Source of the DNA: Adineta vaga
Lineage: Eukaryota; Animalia; Rotifera
Direction: 5' to 3'
Length of the DNA: 64,000 nucleotides
NCBI GenBank assembly: GCA_021613535.1
Contig: CP075492.1
Span: forward strand, 9,796,001 to 9,860,000
Part shown: in pieces, positions 4,271-62,548 of the stretch
Layout: each line of letters opens with the position of its first letter
How positions within the stretch are numbered: position 1 is the stretch's first letter
Position numbers and translations under genes: made by a program
Notes under the pieces: generated by a model
What the model was told of the DNA's origin: nothing
Seen by the model: only the letters and a program-made list of their open reading frames with translations
Database searches by the model: none

Positions 4271-4706
4271 TATAATGTGTTTGGAAAAGGAAGAAGATAA
4301 AAAGGCAACAGGATTTGAAAGGCATAAGATTTTAAAAAAAACAATAAAAGGAAGGAAAAGTAAACATATAAAGCATGCATTGTATCAACGCTCGTATATG
4401 AAGAAACCAGCGATAAATAAAAACATGCATGGACTTGAAGACGAATAGGAAAAACAAATGTTATAGACATGTGTATGTCGTACACTCTCTTCAATGTGTG
4501 TGAAACTAGTTGCATACAATGCTCTCTGTCGTTGAAAGAAATCAGTCAAGATTATTTTTCGATCACGTCATCATAACTGATGACTAAATCGGGAAAATAA
4601 GAAAAATTCCCATTACCAGTTTTTTTCATGAGGCATCATGGTTACTTTCGATTTTGCTTCCATTCTTTTGTAAATGATATTCACGGACAATTACAAATAA
4701 ATTTAA

Positions 4707-4937
4707 CCCTTTCGCTCCCGGCGACACATATACGTGTGCGAACATTTTTAAATAGAAATTTGGATTTTCGCAGAAAAAGCTGGAAGCAAAGGATTAAAGA
4801 ATTGTATGGTAGACAGATTTATCGAGCTGTATCGAACGATCTATCTCTTAAATATTCACCGTCGGCTTTTGCTGGAAAATTTCAAATTTTTATAAAAATT
4901 GTTTGGAGGCGTATATACGTCGCCGGGAGTCAAAGGG
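4707..4937. mobile_element. Non-autonomous piggyBac-type MITE (231 bp)
   Basis: TTAA at 4703-4706 and 4938-4941; imperfect ~28-bp TIRs CCCTTTCGCTCCCGGCGACACATATACG / CGTATATACGTCGCCGGGAGTCAAAGGG; CCC...GGG ends typical of piggyBac. Confidence 0.9.
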
Positions 4938-5139
4938 TTAAAAAATACTCTTCAGATTCATTTACTCAATTCGTTTCTAAGTGACAAATGACACTTTTAT
5001 CATTAAAGAAAATAGCTTATACTTTTCTGTTTGTCCTTTATGTTAATCATGATAATAAGATTTGTGCCATTTTTTTTCTCGCACGTTCATTTATTTAAAA
5101 TCTTGTGAGTACTCGCATCCTTTAAATATATCAAAACTG

Positions 5140-8383: not shown

Positions 8384-10125
8384 GTCTAAATCATTGATTT
8401 CAATAGTCTCTTATTTATCTATACAGAAATATTTTCTCATTTATTGTCGAACAGAACAATGAAGAAGAAATATTCATTTTATAACAATAAACCATCATTG
8501 ATAGACGTTGATATTGTTCGTTCTATCGAGCATTATTTCTTTTTATTCATTGAAAAGTCATTCGTCAGGTCATTCTTCTTTTACATTTTGTTTAATGTAG
8601 AAAAATGTAAATGTACACTCTCTTTTCGAAAGCAAAATATACGAAGTATACATATTGACTTTAACTATTTAATCTATAAAAATAAACAAATATTTATGGT
8701 TGTTTCAGTTTATCACAAATGTAGGACAAATGCAGAATACTAAATAAATAACAAACGTACGCACAATTATTCTTTCTATCTGACACGAGTAAGAACTTGT
8801 TCAAAGAAAATTATAAGATCGTTTATGAAGCTGGCCAAAAGGAATCGCATTGAATACTATCTTATAATTCATTAACACGAATATCAAATTAAACTGAATA
8901 GAAAATGATTTGTTGATAAAAAACAAATTATAAATTTTGTTAGCGAAGTCTAACGTGTACACGCTGCTTTCGCGAATAACGTGTAAAACAACATGTATTT
9001 TAAATGTTGCCAGGGTTTCGTACATTTTGATTCTGCTTGGTACACTTGGTATTCGGAACCCTGAACTGGGTGATAATCATCAATAACAAGACCACCCATA
9101 TACATGAATACGAAAATTATTATTTTATTTCAGCAGTAAGAGATGGTAATCAACCAATGGCATAGGAATGCGTGAATACACATGTACTATCTACCAACCT
9201 AACATCCTATTTCCGTTCGCTGATAGTAGAAGAAAAAAATTAAAATTTGTGAAAACTTGCTGTAGCATAATTATAGATCCATATGAGGGGTTCTATAATT
9301 TTGCCGTACCCTGTACAGATAGAACAATGAAGAAATTAGAATAAGATCAGCTGGTGCATCGAAAAAATCTTTTCTCAAAAGGCGATTGTTTATCTTTCAG
9401 ACATATTCGAATAAATCTATATTCTACTGCTTTATCCATCATGTCATTCCTTATTCACATCTTCATAAATAAGTAAATTTTCATAATATTTTACAGAGAA
9501 AATTCCATTAATTTTAGTGTATTACGCTGTAAGTATATTCTTTATCTAATGAAAGAGAGAGAAGATGTGTTTTATGTCATGAAGAAACAACATCATTGGT
9601 TGTGATGGACTGGTTATTAATTCAGATGCTGATATAAAGGCTTTTCAAAAGATAATATATTCTGTCATTTTAATAGGAAGATAGAAGAAAATGAGTGAGT
9701 AGATGAAAGAAGGAAAGAAGTATTTCTTTGAAATAGACGATTTATGTTTTTGTTAATTAAAAAGTACATTATCATGAGAGATCGCGTGAGAATTTATTGA
9801 CAACATTTGAGATAATTATGTTTGCGATTTATGTTTCAATGAAATGCATCATCTCATTCTTTCAGAAGTTGATTTACGAGAACTTTCTCATCTCTATCCC
9901 TTAACTTTATATTATCATATAGAAAGGCATTTGATGTCGGTATTAACAGCATGTAAAATATCATTTCGAAAGCAATGCTCATAGAGCAGAAGTAATTTCC
10001 GTTTTTTCTTATTAGATAGTAAAGAAGAAGACGAATAAGAAACATGTTTCTTGCCGATTTTCATTTAGAACATAACTCTATGGTATGAGACCTTTTTATT
10101 TTTAGTAAAAAAATAGAATTACTAA

Positions 10126-11491
10126 ATGAACGTCGATCGTTTTTGGTATGCTAATCAAACAGTAACTATCCCTGCTGTTTGGCATAATATTTCTGGATTA
10201 GTCTCCTTGTTATGTTTAATATTTGGAGTTATTTCCAATGGTTTAGTTATATTTGTATTTACTAAGTAAAAATAAGCAGAAACTTATGTGAAATATTTAA
10301 TTCATTATCTTTGTACTTCTAGAAATGACAATTTACAACGGCCAAGAAATTATTTTCTTATCAATCTTGCCATTACAGATCTGGGACTATTACTAACAAA
10401 TAATTCTATGCATGTTATTTCATCCTTTCGAAAACATTGGATATTCGGACAGATAGGTAAATGAATATTTTCAGTTTTAGAAAATGAACAGTTTTTAACT
10501 TTGATTATACGTATTTTTAGGCTGTAATTTCTATTCAGTTTGTGGTGGAGTGTTTGGTTTAACATCAATTGCAACGATGGCATCGATTTCTTTAAATCGT
10601 TTGTCTGCTGTTAATGATCCATTTAGTTCATTGAAACTGAGTAGTCGTCTAACTTTACGTTAGTTTATGAAGATAGAAACCTAAGAAAATAAATATATAT
10701 TTTGAATTTTGTTAGGATGTCTTGCGTTTACATGGATTTATGGTTCAATATGGATAATACCACCATTATTTGGTTGGAATCGATTCATTTTAGAAGGCTT
10801 TGGTACATCATGTACTTTTGATTATGTTTCAACCGATTTACTTGATCGTTTGTTTATAATCATGTTAGTTACTGGTGGTTTCTTCATACCATTGTCAATA
10901 ATTTTACTTTCATATTGTTCAATTTTATCGAAATTATCCGAACGTGGTCGACAATTAACATTGAGCAAAACTGATGATGAACGATGTTTAAATCAATCGA
11001 ATGTTATAACACGAAGTCTTAGTCAATTAAATACAGTAAATGAATTAGGAGTCAGTCGTGGAGAACCAACAGTTCTCGATATTAATGAAAATAGTCTTAC
11101 TCAAAATATGCGTCGAACAGAAGCTCGTGCTACACGTACTGCATTAGTGATATGTGCTCTATTTTGTTTAGCATGGGGTCCTTATGCTCTGATGGCTTTA
11201 ATTTCTCTTGCTGGTTTTAATCATTTAGTAAATGCTTATATAACATCAATGCTTGGCATTCTAACAAAATTTGCTGCATGCATAAATCCATTGATATACG
11301 CTATTTCATTAAATGGTTTTTATGAACAAATTCAATCTTACGTACGATGGATCTGTCGATGTGGTAGACGACATAATCGCCCATATAAATCATCAAATCT
11401 TGATCTTTCTCGACGAAATCTCTCGAATTTAATAGAATATAATAATCGACAACAGACTCATTCAACTCCAGTCAATCGAGATAGTACATAA
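10126..11491 (+). CDS. Opsin, rhabdomeric (Gq)-like, four exons
   Basis: TM1 GVISNGLVI, NYFLINLAITD, GWNRFILEGFGTSCTFDY (E181 equivalent), AWGPYA, retinal lysine in LTKFAACINPLIYA. Confidence 0.9.
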
Positions 11492-11610
11492 ATTGATTTA
11501 TCTATTCCTGCTTTGTTTAATCAAGTTCGAATTAACTTTTATTGTTTCTCTTTTCATTATAAACAAAAACACCGGCGAGAAGAAAAATACAAGGAAAAAA
11601 TCAACTTCCA

Positions 11611-14600
11611 TTAACCAATTTCATAATACTGATGATCATCTTGATGTGAATCAATTTTATATCTTCGTAATAATTGTTCATTTTGTTCAGGTGTATTCAT
11701 GGGTAATGTTATAGTCGATGTTGGATAACGAAATGTACTCAATAATCCATTCGGCATACTCGTAAGATATTCGGTATTAACACGAAATGATGTTTGATGA
11801 TCTGTACTAAGTATTTGTTTATTGATTTCAGATGATTGAGCTGAACTATAACCACTACTACTTGCATTATAATGTTGAGTAGGTTTATCTTCTTTGGTTG
11901 TGGATGTTGTTGTTGTTGTTTTTTTATAAATAATTGAAAGTTGATGAAGATAAAAATGTTGAATTTCTTTTTGAAGTAAACAATAGAAAATAAATATGAA
12001 TAAACCTTGAAAAGAATTTAATATTGTAAATATATATGAAAAAATTGAAGAGATTTGTTCATGTAGATGAAATAAATCAATTAACCATGTTAAACCAAAT
12101 AGAATTGATAATGTTGTTATATTACGTAATGAAAATCTAGAATAAAAGTAATGATATGTACTAAAGAAGAGAATTAACTCTTTTTTTTCTGAATTTACCG
12201 AATTCCTTGTAAAGAATTATAAGAACTGGTTAAATGTTTACAAATAATATAAATTGATATTGTAAAAAAGCAAATATTTGCCTGTTAAAATCGAAAAAAT
12301 AATAATTATCTTTCGTTTTTACATAGAAAAAACTTACAAGAATAAGAAGAATGAATGGGATTGTAAATGCCCAGATAAATGCATTTTGATACGAAAACCA
12401 ACAACTAAAAGACGATAATTTTAATTATTCTTTAAATGTACAAATAAATAGGAAATTATATTAAAAAAAAGATCTATTTTAAGATGAGTATGTGTTGAGC
12501 ATAATCAATTTAACATAGTTTTTGCCCTCAAAACGGATGCTTTGCTGAATAAATAGAACGTGAATGAATTATGTGAATCTTTGATGAATCAAAAGTACAA
12601 TGAATTAATTCAAAGAATGAAAACGACCATTCATTTCGACTTCTATTTCTCTTCAACTTAAATACAACTACAATTGATAAATACTCACTTTCTACTTGCA
12701 AAATATCCATGATTTGATAGAGAAATTGAAAGAACAACGATTAGTAATGGAAAACCATAAGCATAGAATGCATATGCAATAATTCGAATACGATCAATTT
12801 TAAATGCATGTTTTAATGCTATAATTAATTCAATACCATCAACAAACATCCAAGATAATGTTGCAAGAAGACAATAATGATATAAAATAACCATGATTCG
12901 ACAATCGAACTATATTGATAAAATTCAATAAATATCACAAATTTTATTAGAAATATTTTCCTATTTACTCGATATTGTACTTGTTCAATACCAAATAGAT
13001 AGATAAATTGTGCAATTAATAAACAAATCGACATATTTATATGTAAAACACTACGAACAAGCATAAGATCATCATTTATATCCATACGACATCTAAACGA
13101 ATGAGACTAGTATAAAATCTATTTTCTCAATCATTTCTTTCTCTTCATTACCGCACAGCCAACGCTATAATTGTCAGTATTAAACAAATAATTGACATTA
13201 CATTTCCAATATTCGCTAGAATAGATAATCGATGGGTATGTCCATTTGTAATTGACTAAAAAACGATAAACATCAAGCTTCTTCTAATATTTATTAGCAA
13301 ACTAACCTTAGTAAAACTGGTTTGAAAATTCTTCAAAATTGCAAATATTGATAGATGATTACATGAACAAATTGAATGAGTAGAATTCGAAGATAATAAA
13401 TAACATCCATCTGTACTCCATTGAAATGTATTGTCTATGTGTTTTAGATAAGCACAAGTTGATATTTGATTTGAATTATTCAATGGATCCTATTTTCAAA
13501 TGAAGTTTTCTTTTTAAATATATTACGAATTTTAGTGGTAAGCTTACCAAATGTTGGAAGGTAATTTGAATATCTTGTTGAAGTTTTTGTTTTCCATTCA
13601 GATTAACAAGAGGACTATTTAATTTATTGTTTGTTTGGTATTGATTCAAATATTCATTCAATTTTGATAGAACAAAAAATGTAACATTCATTTTCTCATC
13701 CATTGAAATAACGACGGATCGATCGATATTTTCCAATTGTTGTGAATTGACAAAGAACTCTATACAAAGAAAATAATCATTTACATTGTAAAATATCTGC
13801 AAATTCAATTCATTTCTAACCGATATGATTATTAATTGAAACAAATGAATTCGGTATATCAAGCAATTGTAAACCAATAAAATCCATTTGTTGAATGATT
13901 CGTATAGTCATATTCCATGTCTCATTGATCCATTCATCTTCATTATCAATAAGCGTATCAAGAAATGAAATGAGTTTCTAGACAATAATAGAAGAAAAAA
14001 AGTTCATTAGATTTTCTTGATGAACATATCGTTTTTATCAAACTTTGGCAAGATTTCTCTTTTGATTAAATGATGAAAATTTTTCCAAATAACCATCAAT
14101 CTTCTTCAATGATTGTTTCGCTGAGTTATTTTTATGATCATTCAATGAACATCTATCTTGAAGATCATTTTCAAACATTAATAAGTCAAAATCATCTCGA
14201 GATATTGATGTCTAAATTGAAATAAACGATTTCTATGAATGCTACAGACGAAGTTCTTACATCCTCATGTAATACATAGCGCATAAATGGATTATAGAAT
14301 GGACATTGACAAATTGTATGAGTACCATTTGAACATAATAATTGACATGCAAAGAACATGTCGGATGAACTGAAATGAGAAAAGGAAAACGAACGTATGG
14401 AAAATGAAGGAAAAAAGGAATTTACTCGAATTGAAATGATGAAGTACTGGAACGATATGCACGACATTGATAACGTAATTCAGAAGACTAAAAAATAAAA
14501 ATCACATCATTCTTGTTATAATTAACATTTGTTCTTCTTATTGGAAACAGCTGAAGATCACTGAAGTGTTTGTCTCGAACTTGAGACGCTAGCATTGTTG

Positions 14601-43077: not shown

Positions 43078-43859
<782 letters not shown>

Positions 43860-44055
43860 ATATGAATAAAAGAAAGGAAACATTTCTTTTTTGATCATTG
43901 CTCGTTACATTTCATTTGTTTTTGTCGAGCATTTGTTGTTCAACTGATATAAAAAAAAATAAATTATATAAGAACATTCTATCAACAAGAAGCAAAATAA
44001 AATCACTAGATTTTGTTTTTTTCTAGTGGCCTAGCAATTCTTCCTAATCAACAGA

Positions 44056-44270
44056 ATGAATGGTTTTCGTTATCAAAAATGGGATCCGTTGTTGATCATC
44101 AGTCAGATTATTTCCATTCAAAGTTTATATTATCTCGGACTTGGTTTCTGGTTTTTATTGATTACACAATTTTTCTGCATTGTTATTATGACAATTCTAT
44201 GTTCCCATGAACATCTTATCGAAAAATAGAATTTTTAAATATTCCCTTGGCATCACGCGTGGATCTTTAA
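44056..44270 (+). CDS. SYS1: SYS1 Golgi trafficking protein; fragmented, with further pieces at 43585-43735, 44461-44510 and 44545-44586
   Basis: [30 protein letters not shown]...APTLDYMF; HVYHFIACWIYNSQFP; IMTILSEHLSKKR; NIPLASRVDL*. Confidence 0.8.
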
Positions 44271-44383
44271 ATATATATTTATAGATATATACATATGTAC
44301 ATCTATTTGTTTAATATTTTATCAGAAAAAAAAAGAAATAATAATAAGATAATTGTTCGAATGTCTTTCTTTTTTCATTCAAG

Positions 44384-45294
44384 ATGACATCTAAACGTGT
44401 TTGTGTATATTGTGCGTCGAGTAATGCTTGTGATCAGAAATTTTTTCAAGCTGGTCGACAATTCATGTATATCATTTTATAGCTTGTTGGATATATAATT
44501 CACAATTCCACGTTTATGGTGGAGCACAATGTGGTGTAATGGGCTATTATTATGACAATTCTTTCTGAACATCTTTCGAAAAAACGTTTATGAAAACTGA
44601 AGTACTTCATCCAGGTTAGAAACTCATCATAAAGGACGTCTTTAAATATATATTTATAGATATATACATATGTACATCTATTTGTTTAATATTTTATCAG
44701 AAAAAAAAAGAAATAATAATAAGATAATTGTTCGAATAGAAAACCATTTCTAAGAAAAAATTAAAGTCGTTAAGAGTTTATTCGGACACGATACTTCGAT
44801 TCGATCCAAGGTCAATGCGCCCGTGTGGCTCAGTGGCTAGAGCACTTGTCTAGTAAACCAGGGGTCGACAGTTCAATTCTGTCCTCGGGCATAACTAACT
44901 TATGAATTTTTTTTTTAAGAAAAGTTTTCTCGTGTTTCAATATTGTAAAGAATGTAGATGTCTACATTGAACAACTCCAGGTTTAACAGAAGTACATGAA
45001 GTTGAATCAATGCATGTTCGAAAACATGGTATGATGATGAATTCTGATGCTCTCATTGCATTACCTGGGGGCCCTGGAACAGTAGAAGAATTAATGGAAG
45101 CAATTACTTGGAAACGTTTAGAATTAATCGATGTACCAATATTTATTATTAATCTCGATGGATTTTATGACCCATTATTACAATTATTTGAAAATATGTT
45201 TAAAGAACGTTTTATTGATGAAGTTAGAGATAAACATTGGATTGTAGTCAATACTATTGAGGAAATTATTGAAAAGTTAAAATTGATGTTGTAA
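44384..45294 (+). CDS. LOG-family (LONELY GUY/YgdH-like) phosphoribohydrolase, bacterial-like; 5' part scrambled; one intron
   Basis: RVCVYCASS, VYGGAQCGVMG, SMHVRK, IALPGGPGTVEELME (PGGxGTxEE), NLDGFYDPL; intron from ccag|gttag (~44615) to ctccag (~44980). Confidence 0.85.
44819..44891 (+). tRNA. tRNA-Thr(AGT), inside the LOG intron
   Basis: Cloverleaf: acceptor GCCCGTG/CTCGGGC, D arm GCTC/GAGC, anticodon loop CT-AGT-AA, T arm GACAG-TTCAATT-CTGTC, oligo-T ~15 nt downstream; one mismatch each in the acceptor and anticodon stems. Confidence 0.85.
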
Positions 45295-51952: not shown

Positions 51953-53041
51953 ATGTCTTCGGCACGTAGGATACGTGCTGGCTTGGTCGGTTTTGGCATA
52001 TCAGGCCGAGTATTTCATGCACCATTTCTACATACTATGTCGAATATGTATGAATTCCGAAGTGTAGTAGAAAGACATGCAAATGAAGCTGAAAAGATTT
52101 ATCCATATATAAAAACTGTTCGTTCAACAAGTGAATTATTTGACGATCCTGATATTGATCTAGTGATCATAACGACATCAAATGATTTACATTATTCATT
52201 GAGTAAAGAAGCATTAGAAAAAGGCAAACATGTTGTTGTCGAAAAGCCAATGACAATTCGAAGTTCAGAAGCATTGGAATTAATTGAATTAGCCAAGAAA
52301 AACCAATTGATTCTTTGTCCATATCAAAATCGTCGATATGATTCAGGTTATCGTACAATAAAAGAAATCATCGAAAAGAAATTATTAGGTGATGAGATAT
52401 TAGATTGTGAAATACATTTTGATCGTTATCGACCTGAATTAAAACCTGGAAATGTATGGCGTGAAAGAAATGAGTCAGGTGCTGGCATATTTTATGATTT
52501 AGGTTCACATTTAATTGATCAAACATTAAGTTTATTTGGACATCCACAAACAATTACGGTTGATATTCGAATACAACGATCTGTTGCACAAATCGATGAT
52601 TGCTTCGATATTCGACTTGATTATGGTCATTTACGTGTTACACTTAAATCAAGTATGCTTGTAAGAGAAGTGGGTCCACGTTATGTTTTACACGGTCCAC
52701 AAGGTTCTTTTATTAAACATGGTGATGATATTCAAGAAGGTGTCCTAAGAAATGGTGCGATGCCAGTAGTTCCAAGTGAAGAAAATGATTGGGGAAAAGA
52801 ACCGATCGATGACGAAGGTCTTCTTCATACGGAAACGAAAGATGGACGAATTATTAAAGAAAAATATCAAACACTACGTGGAGATTATGGTCTTTTCTAC
52901 AAACAATTATATGCAGCAATTGTTCAAGAAAAAAACTTAGAAATTCGACCAGAAGATGGTTATAATGTTATACGAATGATTGAACTTGGCTATCAAAGTA
53001 GTCGAGAAAAGAAAACAGTGCAATGTAGTGGACTTTTATAG
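51953..53041 (+). CDS. Gfo/Idh/MocA oxidoreductase (YdgJ/IolW-like), intronless, bacterial-like
   Basis: GLVGFGISGRVFHAP Rossmann motif, GKHVVVEKP, YQNRRYD, GIFYDLGSHLIDQ. Confidence 0.9.
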   Translation: MSSARRIRAGLVGFGISGRVFHAPFLHTMSNMYEFRSVVERHANEAEKIYPYIKTVRSTSELFDDPDIDLVIITTSNDLHYSLSKEALEKGKHVVVEKPMTIRSSEALELIELAKKNQLILCPYQNRRYDSGYRTIKEIIEKKLLGDEILDCEIHFDRYRPELKPGNVWRERNESGAGIFYDLGSHLIDQTLSLFGHPQTITVDIRIQRSVAQIDDCFDIRLDYGHLRVTLKSSMLVREVGPRYVLHGPQGSFIKHGDDIQEGVLRNGAMPVVPSEENDWGKEPIDDEGLLHTETKDGRIIKEKYQTLRGDYGLFYKQLYAAIVQEKNLEIRPEDGYNVIRMIELGYQSSREKKTVQCSGLL

Positions 53042-54101: not shown

Positions 54102-54496
54102 ATGTTAGCCAAGCATTACCGCAAGTAGATCACTAATTCGTACATACATAATATCTTATTTTTATTTTGTTTGATTTAGATTGTCGAATAGATATTATTC
54201 TTATTGTGTTAGTATTATTCACGGTTATGGCATATTCCGGACCAGCTATGCAAAGAATAGTCATCAACAATCATGAATGGGAAGTATCTAACGAACCGGG
54301 ATGGGAAGAAGTCATTGAAAAAGCGAATGCTGTACGAGAGCAAATCTTTCGATCTTGTAAGACACTTGCAGAATGTAGCCAAATTGTTGATAAGCTCCAT
54401 ACTATTTTCGAACGTTATCCAGCATCGAAACATTACTATGAAACTCACAAAGAAGAAGTAGAAGATATGATTTCTTCTATATTCAAATGGGGTTGA
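54102..54496 (+). CDS. Small secreted protein, paralog A (C-terminal SSIFKWG)
   Basis: ATG 54102, phase-1 GC-AG intron (gcaagt at 54121 to ag at 54179), hydrophobic signal IILIVLVLFTVMAYS, CxxxxxC, clear paralog at 58732. Confidence 0.75.
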
Positions 54497-54869
54497 ATAT
54501 ATTCAACTCTTAGGTGAATAATTTTTATTTTTTTCAAAGATTGTATAAACTGTTGCCGTCAGTCACAAATAACTCGCGTTTTTTCTGTATAATTTAATTT
54601 GAGTCTGAAGTGTATAATTTATGTAATCAGGTAAGAAAAAAACTCCGATATATATATATATTCTTAGCATGAGAATGCGTAGGAATATTGTTTTATAATA
54701 AAACAATTATAAAAATCATGTTTATAAATTTATGAAGATCAATTTTTGTTGATAATAGTATCATTTGTCAGTCGAAAATCTTATATGATGAAAGATTACA
54801 AAAGTATTCTTGCGTAATTCATTGTGACGGAAATATATCTGTTTGATTTGTCGAGAAAAAAAATATGGC

Positions 54870-54987
54870 GACGAGTGTCGATTTGATCCCAGCCCATGGT
54901 AGCTAGGTTCACCTTGCGGTGATTAGCTAACCGAATAGTAGTGCTTCAGTCTCAATACATTGATTTGAACCGGGATCGCGGCTCATC
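54870..54987 (-). ncRNA. Putative structured Pol III small RNA, variant L (family unrecognised)
   Basis: 5'/3' ends pair; 12-bp stem; four-way junction; GCAA tetraloop; T-run after the 3' end; TATA-like element at about -24 to -31. Confidence 0.55.
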
Positions 54988-55103
54988 GAGCTCTTTCTAT
55001 TCTTTTGTGCTATATAAATTGTGTTGCAGTTGATGTTGTGCAAGAATATTGCACAAGATGAAAATAAAACAAGACAAAAGGAAAGATAGAAGTGAATGTC
55101 ATC

Positions 55104-55221
55104 GATGAGCCGCGATCTCGATTCAAATCAATGTATTGAGACTGAAGCACTACTATTCGGTTAGTCAATCACCGCAAGGTGAATTTGGCTGCCATGGATC
55201 GGGATCAAATCGACACTCGTC
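55104..55221 (+). ncRNA. Putative structured Pol III small RNA, variant R
   Basis: Same fold as variant L with compensatory and wobble substitutions; T-run at 55230-55237. Confidence 0.55.
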
Positions 55222-56999
55222 ACATTATCTTTTTTTTATTCATGGCTGAAAAGAGCTACATTTGCTATTTGGCGGAGTTCCCTCTTCGGAAAGAAAAGGT
55301 TATACGGAGCATAAGAATGCTTAAAATTTATTGGTTTATACAAACTAAGCTGATATTTGCCTAGACAGGTTTGTGTTTTATTGTATTGAGTAAACAATGT
55401 AAAGGAAAGACAAAACTGTATAGTGCAACAGGATAAAAAAAACATGCATGAGAGATATGCAACGAGACACAGGTTTTATCATCGGATCAATGCAATTGTA
55501 CGGTTCGTTGATTCTCATAAAAAAACATTGTTTGGGAAAAAAACAAATTTATTGTGTATATGGATAGGAAGTAGTCGACCTCATACAAACACAAAAACAA
55601 CTTCAATACATTCCAGTATTAATTTCCATCATAAGTATACTTAACTATTTATGTATCCACGTAAGGCGGCACTTTTGACATATACGTAGATATTTGTTTT
55701 AGAATGCGAAATAAATGTTTATGGGACACTATACAGTAAATTTGAAAGCGTAAGAAATTGTTTACACTAAGGAATAGTTTGAATTTTGTATTGTACCATG
55801 CGTTTTGTCTCTTTTTGAAACTATCTTTGCAGCTTGATGTCAGACTTCGAACTCGTCTACAAAATATGAGTCAGGCAACGTTAAACTTTAAGTTTTAAAA
55901 TAGTCCGATCTCATCGTTATTTCATTAATAATACATATAAAAATTTTATTTGAGATTATGTGACAAACTGTATTCGTGTTGTACACGTTGCTACATTTTG
56001 TTTCAGATTTCCACTAGAAATACTGGTTGACGTCGCAGTGTGTGAGATTTCGTTTAAATTACTTCCAGCGCTATCTACAAGTTTACTATGCTGCTAAAAT
56101 ACTTAGTGTCTGTCCATTTATTTTATCAGTCTGTATTGATTTTGAAAAAAACGTACGATCTCAGGCTGAATTTTCTTTATTTCACAAAAGAATCTCGCCT
56201 GAGTTATATTTGAATAACGAAGTAAATTTGGAATATCAATACGTTTCTAAAAGATAGCCTGTGGATCAATCTTACGATTTCTTATTTTATTGATGCATCA
56301 GACATGTTATATCTCAACATGGATTGCATTTCCTTTGTTTTACTATAAAAATGATTTTATTGTATCAACAGTGTGTCACATATATTTGTAGATTGAGTAG
56401 TAATTTGATTAAAACTAACATTTCGTGAGAAACATATATCGATAGTAAGTATATGATAGTCACTAGACGATCTATTTTTTCTCTGGAGCTAAGAATACAC
56501 TGCATTAGGTATTTTGCATCTTTCTTATTTAACCGATTGAAACAGAGTAGGAAAAAAGAGCAGATACAAATATTAATAATAGAATCATAGATAAGGAATA
56601 TTTTATTTTGAAATTGTCAATGTTTTTTAACATGATGCAAATCTTGAATAGTTGTTATTTCATATTGATTTTGCAATTTTCATGGTATTCACTATTCACG
56701 CGGTGAAAGAATTATCAATTTGAATGAACTGTTTTTTTTTCATCTGCTTGCTATAGACATTCTACAATAAGAAATATGAAAGTATGAAGAGAAATAAATA
56801 TTTTCTTTATTTTCGTTTTGTTTAGATATCTGTAAGTATACACTAATTTCGAATACAAAGTGTTTGCCATTTTTTACAGATACGAGCCACCATAGAGATA
56901 TATTTGTGATCAAATAGGACATATCGGTTGCCTGTTAAACTGTATATATATACCAAGTTTTTGTGGAGATAGATAAAATACTGCATTGTACATTGCGTA

Positions 57000-57388: not shown

Positions 57389-58731
57389 ATCGAATGTTTT
57401 GCGATATTTAGTAAAAGGTATCTATCTTAGTTATGACAAAACTATTTGACTTGTAAGAGGCGGCATAAAAGAAGGAATTTCAAAAACTATTAAAGTAGTA
57501 AACTAATTTAAGCAATCATAGTGTTAATATGGTTTTCAAGTTTTGATGTCTACTCAGGAAACAGCAATTAAATAAAATCAAACAAAACGATTCTCTTATT
57601 ACAATCATTTTGCTCTTATTTTAATTGCAAAAGTTCGTAACTTTTATTCATTTCTCAATGAAGATTAGTGATGAAACGAGTATGTCGTGAGAAAAATATA
57701 TTATTTATGTTCTCTTCATGTTGATTGCTTATTGAAAATAACATAATTGAGAGTTTTCGATCAACTATATGTTCAATATCGATTCTACTTTTGAAGATGT
57801 ATGAATGCAATACTTTCGTCCATCTACCCGCCCACTGTAATTTTTCAAATCATCCTTATCAAAATGAGTGATTCGTCTATAACATTTTCTTCTCATTTCA
57901 TCATATTCACACATCGATGAAGCATACTTAGAGCGTGTCATTGAATGTTTCTAATTCTTTTCCAAATTATCTCAATAGGAAACTGTTTCTTAACCATGCA
58001 AAGTATTCACTCTCGCCTACTGTCTCTCACTTTTTTTCGAGATAAAATCATATCGATGTCGTAGGTGTAATATGCACATCGCAGCCGATTGATCAGATAC
58101 ACAGAAAAAAATATCATACCCACAAAATCACCTATACTTTTCGATACATCAGTTAAGATCAAACGATATTATATCCTCAATGTATTGTTTAGACCATCAT
58201 AGTCATTGAAAAACTTACGGAAATCTGATATATATATATATATGTTTACATATTTACTTTTCAGGGTAACACTTACCAAACGTTATTTTAATTTCTTTTT
58301 TTTTGAAGGTTCTTAACTCATTCGTTTTCAGGTGAATAAATATCTAAGAACGGATTAACATGACATTTCATTATATTTGATTGTAACTTTCCTTTCTCGG
58401 AATAAGAAACCATTCGCATGCATATTTATTGAATAATAACAATCAATCATCGTGTCAGTCTACCGGCCTTCCTCTGATTTGCATAGTATTCAACATGTAT
58501 ATGACGCACTAATTAAAGAGAAAATCCCACACAGGTGTGTTTCAATCATAATATTTAACTAAAAAAAATCATGACTCAATAAGAATGTTTTATATAAATG
58601 ATGGGTTTCTTCGACAAATGACTATATTTTTCGAGTGTACTATTCACCAAAATCAAATATTGCTGTAAGTAGATGGACAAATGTAGTTCGTATTATTTCT
58701 TATATTTGTTTTGTGTATTTTAGAATTTCAT

Positions 58732-59040
58732 ATGCGTATAATACTTTTCGCCTTACTTTTATTTACTGAAATGGTGTTATCTCGACCTCTGATGCAAAGA
58801 ATTGTCATTGATAATCATGAATGGGAAGTGCCTAATGAACCAGGATGGGAAGAAGTCATCGAAGAAGCAAATGCTGCACGAGAACGAATCTTTCGATCTT
58901 GCACGACATTTGCAGAATGTCGTCAAGCTGTCGATGAACTCTATACTATTTTCGAACACCATCCAGTATCAAAGAAGTATCTTGAAACTCACAAAGATGA
59001 AGTCAATGATATACTTTCATCCATATTCAAATGGGGTTAA
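58732..59040 (+). CDS. Small secreted protein, paralog B (C-terminal SSIFKWG)
   Basis: Signal MRIILFALLLFTEMVLS; shares NHEWEVxNEPGWEEVIExAN, CxTxAEC and SSIFKWG with paralog A; 5'UTR intron at the homologous position. Confidence 0.8.
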   Translation: MRIILFALLLFTEMVLSRPLMQRIVIDNHEWEVPNEPGWEEVIEEANAARERIFRSCTTFAECRQAVDELYTIFEHHPVSKKYLETHKDEVNDILSSIFKWG

Positions 59041-59501
59041 ACGCATTTAACCTCTAGGATATTTCTTAGGTCAAATATTATTTTGTTATTGGTTCTAAAG
59101 ATCGTATGAAGTTTTTTGGACCATTATCTTCAGTCATAGTTGATCTGATGTTTTGTTTTTATGTTTTTGTTTGAATTTATGCGAGTTTACAGTGAGAAAA
59201 TATTCGAATCAGATATGAATATGTCGGCACGTTCCTCAAATACGAAAGCTTAGATATATTATTTAATAATAAATAAGTCATACGTACACATTTTTGGAAA
59301 ACATGATATGTCTCTTACTGTAAGAAAAAAACAGGAAAATAATATTTTCCTTTAATAAATTATATGATATACTATTACATTGAACGTTCGTGATCATACT
59401 GTGAAAACTGATTCCTACGCAATCCAACGTGTTACTCTACAATAACGGTGGTAAATAAAGTATCTTTATTACGTTTGTTGAAGAGAGAAAAAAAATATGG
59501 C

Positions 59502-59619
59502 GACGAGTGTCGATTTGATCCCAGCCCATGGTAGCTAGGTTCACCTTGCGGTGATTAACTAACCGAATAGTAGTGCTTCAGTCTCAATACATTGATTTGA
59601 ACCGGGATCGCGGCTCATC
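59502..59619 (-). ncRNA. Putative structured Pol III small RNA, variant L (copy 2)
   Basis: As 54870-54987; its single difference converts a C-G pair to U-G and keeps pairing. Confidence 0.55.
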
Positions 59620-59735
59620 GAGCTCTTTCTATTCTTTTGTGCTATATAAACTGTGTTGCAGTTGATGTTGTGCAAGAATATTGCACAAGATGAAAATAAA
59701 ACAAGACAAAAGGAAAGATAGAAGTGAATGTCATC

Positions 59736-59853
59736 GATGAGCCGCGATCTCGATTCAAATCAATGTATTGAGACTGAAGCACTACTATTCGGTTAGTCAA
59801 TCACCGCAAGGTGAATTTGGCTGCCATGGATCGGGATCAAATCGACACTCGTC
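59736..59853 (+). ncRNA. Putative structured Pol III small RNA, variant R (copy 2)
   Basis: Identical to 55104-55221 and followed by a T-run. Confidence 0.55.
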
Positions 59854-59948
59854 ACATTTCCTTTTTTATTTATAATTGAGAAGAAATTAGATTTCAGTTT
59901 ATGTAAAAATAAAAATTTTATCGTTTTTCTCGTACATTTTTGTTTGTG

Positions 59949-60912
59949 TCATGACATAAAAGATACATTGCTTGTATATTGATTTGGAATATTACCAGGA
60001 GGATCAAATACAACTACACCATACGACCAATTTCCATCTGTAGATTGAGCTCGACCAACACCAATTTCTCTTGTTGCTCTCCAAACTAATTGTGTAAAGT
60101 TTTCATTATCTCGACATCCATTAGAACCAAACTGATATGTTCGTCCTTCTTTCAACCATTTTCTCACCATTTTACTCGCTGAATAAAAAACTGTTCAACG
60201 CATATGTTTTATATAAAAACAAATCTCACCTGTTAATTCAGTTTGAAATACAGCTGCATAGTTTTCTCCAAGTGTCTGCCGACCAAAATTACGCATCTCA
60301 GCTGGACTATGCTCTAATTTACCAGTTTGTGCCATATGATTAGCCCATCGTTGTGCAATAATCGACAATTGGTCATTTAATGATACGGCTGATGCGTCAT
60401 ATCTACTACGAGCTTTATTAACTTCATTTAGAGTGGCACTTGCAAAATCATCACTATCCTCTGTTGAATTCGAACAATCTAAATTTCAAGATTTATAATT
60501 TATTTCAATCAAGAAAAGATTCATACCAGATCGTGCAGAAAAACCACGAGGTGTTGACTTGTTTTGTATATTATCTTCAAATTTATCGTTAATTGTGCGA
60601 ATTTCTGAAGGACTAAATGGTCGATGCGTACCAGCTGATGACTTCTGATAATTCGTTGTTTTTCTCTTTTGAAATTTTTTCAGAAAAAATACCGCAACAC
60701 CTATTCAATTCAAATTATTCTTTTTTTTCAATTTAGAATTATCTTCATTACCAATATCAATTCCAATAAAAAGTAATCCTCCTAAAGAATTTGCTAACCT
60801 AATAATCACGATTCAAAATAATTAAATATAATTTTTCATTAATCATTAATACTTACCACATATACCAATAGGATTGAAAACAAAGACTCATTTGTTCGAC
60901 TGTTAGACCCAT
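59949..60912 (-). CDS. CAP/SCP-domain protein (GLIPR2/GAPR-1-like)
   Basis: LNEVNKARSRY, AQRWANH, GENY, NFTQLVWRATREIGVG, VVVFDPPGN; several short introns. Confidence 0.8.
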
Positions 60913-62548
60913 AGTTGTAATTTTATACGAAAACTTCTACACGAAAAATGTTTTTATTACACTATATAAAATTGTCCAAAATGTATTTCTTTTTCGTTGT
61001 AAAAAAAAATAACGAAAATCTCTTTATTTGAAAGTAAATGCAATATGTACAACATAAATTGGCATTTATGTTAGTTTGTTTTTCATATTTACTGATCACG
61101 ATGAATTATCATAAGTCTTCCTTATAACTCAATGCATTAAGAAAGTTAACATTGTTATGCTGTTTTTATATGATTTTATTTCTTTTTCCATTGTTCAATT
61201 ATGAAAGTATCAATTGCACGAAATTTATTTATATGATTGAAAATGATGCTTGAGTGAATGAGAATTTTCCATGGATAAGAACAGATTCTTCTTAATTTTA
61301 ATTGTATTTTGTTGATAACTATCTAATGCAAAATTTGTATGAAATTATTCGATTGTATTCGAACATCAATCGAATGACATTGAAGGGCGTTTTGTTTACT
61401 GTTAAAAATTATATGTGGCTTCTGAATTCTACTGTTTTAGTTCTATTAGGACTAATTTGTGACTTCTTTGTGTTTCATATGAAATTTTTCATTTCAATAT
61501 GAACAGTTTAGGAAGAACTGATTTATTAAAAAGACATTAAATCGTGCTGTTCGGCTTTTATAATAGTAATACACTCTGCACTGATTAGAAATATGTAGTA
61601 TGAATGTATTTTGACTGAAAAGAGATAACATCTGTAGATTTATATGCCCCATTAATTAAAATCGATCTTGCCTTGTTTGTGTATATTCCCTATCAACGAC
61701 TATAAATCATACCTCGAATGCTGATGAAAACAAACTAGTTTCTCTCATATTTAAGTTACAGAAAGATGTCGAAAATCGAGAATTCACGAAATGGAAAATT
61801 TTCTCTTCGAATCTATCGATATTTGCATTACATTCAACGGTTTACTCTATCAATAAATCGACCTATGCCAAGGTTGTTTAACGAATCATTGTATTCATAT
61901 TTCAAAATATCCCAGACAGATCACATTCGACATTAATCAAATATCAACCAATACTATCTTATCGAGCAGGTCTAATCATAATATATCATCGAAAAGATGA
62001 TTTCTTTTCACAAAAACCTATTGAATTTTAGGTAATAGCCATGTTTATTGATCTACTGTAAGAGGTATATTTACGATTGCTGTCAATGCAAATTTGATTT
62101 TTCATCAATATAATTGTATATGTGGTTTACGATTGGATACTATAGACAGAAAAACAAGAAACGCAAAAGACGCCATTTGAAACCCTTTTTTTCCTCTTTT
62201 TACGTTTACCTAAGGCAGAGCAAAAATAGGTTTTTATCTATACAGCGTATAGGGTTTATGGTTCTTTATGTTATGTTTATTTAATCATCAATAAAAACGT
62301 TTTCATTGAAAACCAAATTCGATCATTTAGGTAAAACCTATAATAATAGTTTACGAAATGAAAGATAAAAACATCATAGGTATAAAAATATATTTAATGA
62401 TGCGTCTAGCATACGAAAAAAAATAAAAAATTTTTGTTTTGAAACAGTAACAATTTTGACAAAAAAACTACAGAATACGGGCCCGCCCATTTAGTATAAA
62501 ATACATCTGTAAGATTCAATGTAAAAATATACAAAACAGAGGTTTAAG

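Follow-up and report, generated by a model that had tools for sequence, protein, structure and literature searches.

Two 118-nt sequences that stand head to head in the genome of Adineta vaga, as the arms of a cassette forming a 148-nt inverted repeat, raise the question of whether they are genes for a structured RNA or the ends of a mobile element. They lie within 64,000 nt of contig CP075492.1 (assembly GCA_021613535.1, positions 9,796,001 to 9,860,000 of the forward strand), and this whole stretch is referred to here as the window. An initial interpretation made without database searches (the sequence-only reading) had offered either an undescribed family of small non-coding RNAs or an RNA-based mobile element. 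Syntenic homologues, covarying stems, a promoter at fixed spacing and T-run terminators favor the former, and the arms very probably belong to a real, multicopy bdelloid gene family for a Pol III non-coding RNA of about 120 nt. The family is apparently undescribed. Features of the window are listed in the Table.

Table. RNA genes and associated elements of the two cassettes (window coordinates)
Feature	Position	Strand	Remarks
Left (canonical, TATA-bearing) RNA gene	54870..54987	-	118-nt core: P1, double internal loop, P2, loop motif, hairpin 3
Stems of left gene			P1, gene positions 1-6/113-118; 2-bp helix, 8-9/108-109; P2, 11-22/92-103
18-nt motif, left gene	54942..54959	-	UGURUUGAGMCUGAAGCA; gene positions 29-46
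Hairpin 3, left gene	54898..54932	-	gene positions 56-90; sequence variable; GCAA loop in most copies
T8 run, left gene	54856..54863	-	Pol III-type terminator
TATA box, left gene	55010..55018	-	-31..-23; conserved CAAT before it; ungapped conservation among canonical genes
Palindromic PSE-like element (8+5+8)	55036..55056		-69..-49 of left gene, -68..-48 of right gene
Right (partner, TATA-less) RNA gene	55104..55221	+	118-nt core; fold as in left gene
18-nt motif, right gene	55132..55149	+
Hairpin 3, right gene	55159..55193	+
T8 run, right gene	55230..55237	+	terminator
Second whole cassette	59485..59867		383 bp, 99% identical including spacer
Left gene, second cassette	59502..59619	-	T run 59488-59495; TATA 59642-59650
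Right gene, second cassette	59736..59853	+	T run 59862-59867

The two arms differ at 11 of 118 aligned sites (gene positions 15, 18, 62, 63, 81, 82, 84, 88, 95, 96 and 97), and a recount agreed with the sequence-only reading that all of the differences are transitions. Nine are stem positions at which pairing is retained, pairs 18-96 and 63-84 being altered on both strands, and the remaining two (81 and 82) lie in a bulge, as had been described. Folding energies are far better for the outward strands, at -41 to -43 kcal/mol with z-scores of -3.5 and -4.2, than for the inward strands, at -24 and -32 kcal/mol. Both arms also close with oligo-T, 8 T at each end. The argument that neutral decay would not have kept pairing within each arm was supported by simulation of random transitions, in which nine stem changes were all pairing-neutral with P = 0.008 and all 11 changes fell outside the conserved loops with P = 0.0017.

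One shared locus, anchored by Gfo/Idh/MocA, peptide, CAP and ETS genes, carries homologues in A. ricciae and A. steineri as well as in four bdelloids from metagenomes; depending on the genome they are single genes, form head-to-head pairs or make up a tandem array of 13 copies. A homologue search, one of the checks suggested by the sequence-only reading, thus gave syntenic members in at least six further genomes of bdelloids. When metagenomes were scanned for a pattern, nine loci came back: L001, L004 and L009 are true members; L002, L003, L005, L006 and L008 were judged chance matches; and L007, labeled as human-gut metagenome, was left out. Further members were found by a synteny walk via the oxidoreductase gene combined with a covariance-model search. 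L004 keeps the window order, with the oxidoreductase gene (83% DNA identity), one peptide ORF and then an RNA gene pair. In L001 the ETS gene and the region of window positions 59964-60935 adjoin an RNA gene pair plus a tandem copy, and L009 is a lone RNA gene next to a mitochondrial phosphate carrier gene (a second locus). A. ricciae has two single genes, A. steineri two head-to-head pairs, L137 three tandem genes, and L135 a 13-copy tandem array of 209-nt period with two subtypes. In this array (L135:13442-16072) the subtypes are interleaved and differ in and around the loop motif, and the last copy has a foreign 5' half. A distant member of 103 nt (L147:7713-7611), reached via the phosphate carrier gene and thus at the second locus but in another species than L009, has a rewritten P2 with pairing kept; it is flanked by the carrier gene on one side and, on the other, by a region with an RNA-dependent RNA polymerase gene (8759-13413).

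No member was detected in L146 (10711-15435), whose neighborhood is as in L147, in L145, or in Rotaria sp. Silwood1, where the syntenic interval is complete; contigs of R. sordida stop short of the informative region and stand outside this presence/absence comparison. The viral and bacterial/archaeal collections held no true homologue, their three 18-mer matches failing the covariance model.

Covariation was assessed in 17 sequences, with the distant L147 member added separately. P1 and P2 were paired in 97% and 99% of cells, respectively, and double changes were seen at 10 pairs (37 cells), a cell count matched by 0 of 500 shuffles, which ignore relatedness; slid controls paired in only 29–46%. 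When hairpin 3 is extended from G56, double changes occur at 5 of its 9 basal and 3 of its 4 apical pairs, and 7 of the 12 P2 pairs are double-changed once L147 is included. The internal-loop strands CCGC and AAMUCGAYA, with the 2-bp helix between them, are nearly fixed. The sequence-only reading had placed P2 below a four-way junction. Its hairpins 1 and 2 are paired in 89% and 83% of cells without a single double change in the 17 sequences, and the extended hairpin 3, which does covary, is an alternative to hairpin 2, so the junction is a single-sequence minimum-energy prediction that the homologues do not support. In place of these two hairpins stands the 18-nt motif, with 17 of 18 columns invariant in the 17 sequences and 16 of 18 when the distant member is counted. 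The alignments thus show a panhandle (P1, double internal loop, P2) and a hairpin 3 that are under selection for pairing and not for sequence, and an internal loop and 18-nt motif that are under selection for sequence. Resemblances of the 5' hairpin to group II intron domain V and of the RNA to a tRNA-Phe anticodon arm were lost in the homologues and were discarded.

Type 3 Pol III promoters have a TATA box near -30 and a PSE at about -50 to -65, at fixed spacing (PMC7279448). Among five canonical genes, 40 of 80 upstream columns are invariant without gaps, compared with 3 of 80 further up, and two blocks stand out as conserved, the element that spans -69..-49 and a stretch with CAAT and TATA at -37..-23. 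This layout is kept in A. ricciae, A. steineri, L135 and L137 and, loosely, in L147; judged from its sequence it fits a type 3 promoter, and the upstream element is PSE-like. TC directly precedes G+1 in nearly all canonical genes. A run of at least 4 T lies 3' of every intact member, only 2–8 nt beyond P1, and is absent from the decayed partner L004b. Of the Pol III-like signals that had been claimed for both arms, the T runs stand, and the upstream promoter is added to them; that the TATA box is confined to the left gene had been missed. A GGTTCRAATC-like run at +17 resembles a B box, but A. steineri a, L135 type B and L147, which bear a TATA box, have lost it, and a B-box role was rejected for it.

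Partner genes that have the upstream element and no TATA box are the right arm of A. vaga, A. steineri b and c, L001b and L004b. The spacers of the pairs are orthologous across four genomes (116, 115, 118 and 97 nt), yet a tree of the gene bodies, with rough support values of 91/87 and 96/99, joins those of A. vaga with each other and likewise those of A. steineri, so that the pair is old and is homogenized by gene conversion. The sequences accordingly indicate that partner genes have been homogenized with the canonical gene of their own species. A perfect 8+8 palindrome, equidistant from both starts, occurs only in A. vaga and A. steineri, where the partners are near-intact; in L001b and L004b some pairs of P1 and P2 no longer form. 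At least five changes in the A. vaga right gene (15, 18, 88, 95 and 96, polarized by L004a, L009a and L001a) are derived and all are pairing-neutral, which argues that the right gene is still made as RNA.

The second cassette, overlooked by the sequence-only reading, lies 4.6 kb downstream of the first. The flanks of the two no longer align, and each cassette has a 109-aa ORF ahead of it, whose stop codon is 357 nt away in one case and 445 nt in the other; the two ORFs are paralogues, alike in only 77% of their DNA and 73 of 106 residues. Paralogous peptide genes ahead of both cassettes, together with unlike flanks, mean that an old tandem duplication took in peptide gene plus cassette, with conversion; since this duplication the cassette alone has been kept identical. 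An ORF of about 105–109 aa adjoins the RNA genes in most syntenic loci. Such ORFs (window 54167-54496 and 58711-59040; L004:2175-2492) encode a hydrophobic N-terminus and likely secreted products, and the paralogues, which end in IFKWG, had no Pfam match. The neighboring Gfo/Idh/MocA oxidoreductase gene (window 51953-53041) is intronless and has its closest relatives in A. ricciae, A. steineri and Rotaria; the next relatives beyond bdelloids are Bacteroidota proteins (53–56%), and on this protein comparison the gene appears to be an old horizontal transfer common to Adineta and Rotaria.

The 148-nt inverted repeat and the presence of two 383-bp copies, 99% identical within unlike flanks, are features that a MITE, foldback element or SINE would also show. 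Both copies follow paralogous peptide genes, however, and in several species the copies stay at the same locus in single, tandem and inverted forms, retains its upstream promoter, and has neither TSD nor poly(A). Such forms at a fixed locus with upstream sequence rule out a MITE or SINE for practical purposes, so that an element of this kind is extremely improbable, and the RNA-based mobile element of the sequence-only reading finds no support in the same evidence.

The evidence for expression is thin. Nine sequencing runs contain part of the stretch; four were examined, as contigs only, and one of them is on record as RNA. In this permafrost metatranscriptome (run X5, record 10), a 219-nt contig matches 54930-54987 and 55200-55223. 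It reads gene positions 97-120, 60 unseen letters, and positions 1-58 without difference, followed by a different hairpin 3 that by eye has an 11-bp stem with a GCAA loop. The match ends exactly at G+1, despite the TC that precedes it in nearly all canonical genes, which is a weak hint of a real 5' end; contigs show neither ends nor strand. The order of the contig, with the 3' end upstream of the 5' end, could come from concatenation in the library, from closely spaced tandem genes or from a circular form. Two other runs extend over the spacer and hence contain DNA or read-through RNA. In run X1 (record 2, 54821-54977), sequence identical to the left gene and its 3' flank is followed by unrelated sequence right after GATC, which may be the ligation junction of a Hi-C-type library.

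A contig of run X3 (record 5, window 55124-55226, in the right gene) has 7 T>C differences as its only listed changes; the chance that all 7 would fall at T is P = 5e-5, and two coincide with A.C mismatches in the duplex that the fold-back would form. A-to-I (hyper-)editing of antisense read-through of the inverted pair is a possible cause, and would be expected if the locus were a source of dsRNA, in which read-through of the pair yields a hairpin of about 150 bp that feeds RNAi or decoys dsRNA-binding proteins. The whole cassette does fold at -229 to -249 kcal/mol, and the L147 member is about 1 kb from an RdRP gene region. Nevertheless, the edited-looking contig is a single record with a depth of 2.4, and that its run is RNA is a guess; the majority of homologues, being single or tandem, cannot fold back (A. 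ricciae, L135, L137, L009, L147), and selection acts on pairing inside each arm. A dsRNA source is therefore quite improbable.

Rfam was searched at four settings, including 151-base stretches at E up to 10, as the sequence-only reading had proposed; no match came near the gathering score, the only returns being sub-threshold miRNA hairpins, and its statement that no known family could be recognized is upheld. The literature on bdelloid and rotifer small RNAs, 7SK and Ro60, in which subscription journals were poorly covered, yielded no description of the family. Animal type 3 Pol III RNAs are few, namely U6, 7SK, Y, RNase P and MRP RNAs and tRNA-Sec (PMC7279448). Y RNAs are about 100 nt long, their two ends pair to form a lower and an upper stem with asymmetric loops, and they have a U tail and clustered genes (PMC4726728), and vault RNAs are Pol III panhandle RNAs of 80–150 nt in small clusters (PMC8824774, PMC7058938). 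The bdelloid family shares the type 3 layout, the length of 100–120 nt, closed stems, U tail and clustering with Y RNAs and nematode stem-bulge RNAs, and its size, panhandle and small clusters with vault RNAs; its size, bulged closed 5'/3' stem and gene clustering match Y RNA anatomy (PMC4726728).

These likenesses raise the possibility that the RNA is a divergent true Y or vault RNA, whose protein-binding motif has drifted along with a divergent Ro60-type or TEP1 protein. The closed stem has an unpaired C with a 3-nt loop on the opposite strand, and its 5' GCCG and 3' UCGAY are near-misses of the Y strands. The Ro60 site is GGUCCGA / GNCGAA with a bulged C (PMC4726728, PMC4201824). This helix is absent from the family, in which the 5' strand is an invariant GAGCCGC and the A residues of the Y motif are missing. 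GUG-CAC of the upper stem and UUAUC of the loop are absent from the family alignments as well. Conservation is also the reverse of that in Y RNAs: in the bdelloid family the loop motif is invariant, stem sequence varies and the upper stem is free. Vault RNAs carry two internal boxes, A close to the 5' end, with TTACTTCG after it, and B in the 3' half, and only A and B are conserved (PMC8824774). In contrast, no member of the family has an A box or TTACTTCG, the B-box-like run is dispensable, and it is the central loop that is conserved. As the Rfam search also gave no Y or vault match, such an ancestry is improbable.

In 7SK, paired GAUCs lie 6–30 nt apart and are flanked by U (pyrimidine) bulges (PMC2995076), and a 3' terminal hairpin, SL4, precedes the U tail (PMC10083321). 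The family resembles 7SK in its type 3 promoter, 5'/3' closing stem and, in most members, GAUC:GAUC at the base of P2, but its GAUC pair is 85 nt apart and is replaced by AAUC/GAUU in L147, and no SL4-like 3' hairpin is present; identity with 7SK was rejected on these grounds. The genes also differ from those of spliced-leader RNA, as a TATA box plus T run points to Pol III and neither Sm site nor splice donor is present. Two short invariant strands set in covarying stems are the anatomy of small ribozymes too, so a new self-cleaving or otherwise catalytic RNA was considered. It is very improbable: Rfam gave no ribozyme match, no pseudoknot was seen, the RNA is not attached to a retroelement, and with its own promoter and terminator it needs no cleavage to exist.

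The 18-nt motif could instead act as an antisense guide to an snRNA, spliced-leader RNA or mRNA, with the panhandle carrying only a protein cap. The motif is invariant in sequence and folds marginally at best (a hairpin with the following UAC, 0 to -3.7 kcal/mol), and the A/G variation at position 32 would still pair with U. On the other hand, a search of both strands of the window and of the bdelloid loci found no other match within 3 changes, and the family has no box C/D, H/ACA or Sm site. The best duplexes with animal 18S-5.8S-28S rRNA were equaled by 17 of 40 and 24 of 40 shuffles; the rDNA consisted of two animal units from contaminant contigs of environmental MAGs. We consider a guide function unlikely. 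A complementarity to the 5' end of 18S rRNA noticed by eye vanished against shuffles, as did a likeness to 5.8S rRNA (p = 0.12–0.94), and of 30 rRNA-mimic tests (5.8S, 18S, 28S) one reached p = 0.005 and was not repeated in other species.

The reading that we tentatively favor, at slightly less than even confidence, is that of a protein adaptor resembling Y RNA in its action; once a real Pol III RNA gene family is granted, this mechanism is about as probable as not. Pol III with SNAPc and TBP would make a discrete RNA from G+1 to the T run, and the TATA-less partner would use the palindromic element in reverse at lower output. The least sure step is that the RNA would then act within an RNP as an adaptor with two sites. 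One protein, with a Ro60/TROVE-type protein as the first candidate, may dock on the internal loop of the lower stem, with La on the U tail, and the 18-nt motif, held out by the variable scaffold, may recruit a second. Hairpin 3 has shrunk from about 15 bp to 5 bp in L147 with both sequence motifs retained, which is expected of a scaffold between binding sites. A more far-reaching reading, equally tentative, is that the family forms a class of its own among type 3 Pol III RNAs, with no kinship to Y, vault and 7SK RNAs. It would scaffold a bdelloid RNP via the invariant 18-nt motif, the number of genes at a locus (1 to 13) would set its dose, and a single palindromic promoter element would serve transcription in both directions.

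A further type 3 family with a near-invariant motif and large shifts in copy number, kept across Adineta and beyond, points to an unrecognized RNP. Bdelloids are known for their survival of desiccation and radiation, and Deinococcus uses Ro60-type RNA quality control; if the RNA is a Y-like adaptor, the use of such quality control by bdelloids becomes testable. The locus also provides a grammar for rotifer Pol III promoters and a natural experiment on whether a PSE can work in both directions, and it illustrates cleanly how, in an asexual lineage, the arms of an inverted repeat undergo gene conversion.

Three other repeats were noted. In Rotaria sp. Silwood1, a GC-rich inverted repeat of about 100 nt composed of GGTCCC units (L129:6899-7005) lies in the range of a TRAM/LAG1 gene and is likely a small MITE unrelated to the RNA family. 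A weak inverted repeat (69% over about 245 nt) is present at 4702-4942 of the window, and at 43343-44737 three exact direct repeats (59, 130 and 99 nt) stand right before a tRNA-Thr(AGT) gene (44819-44891).
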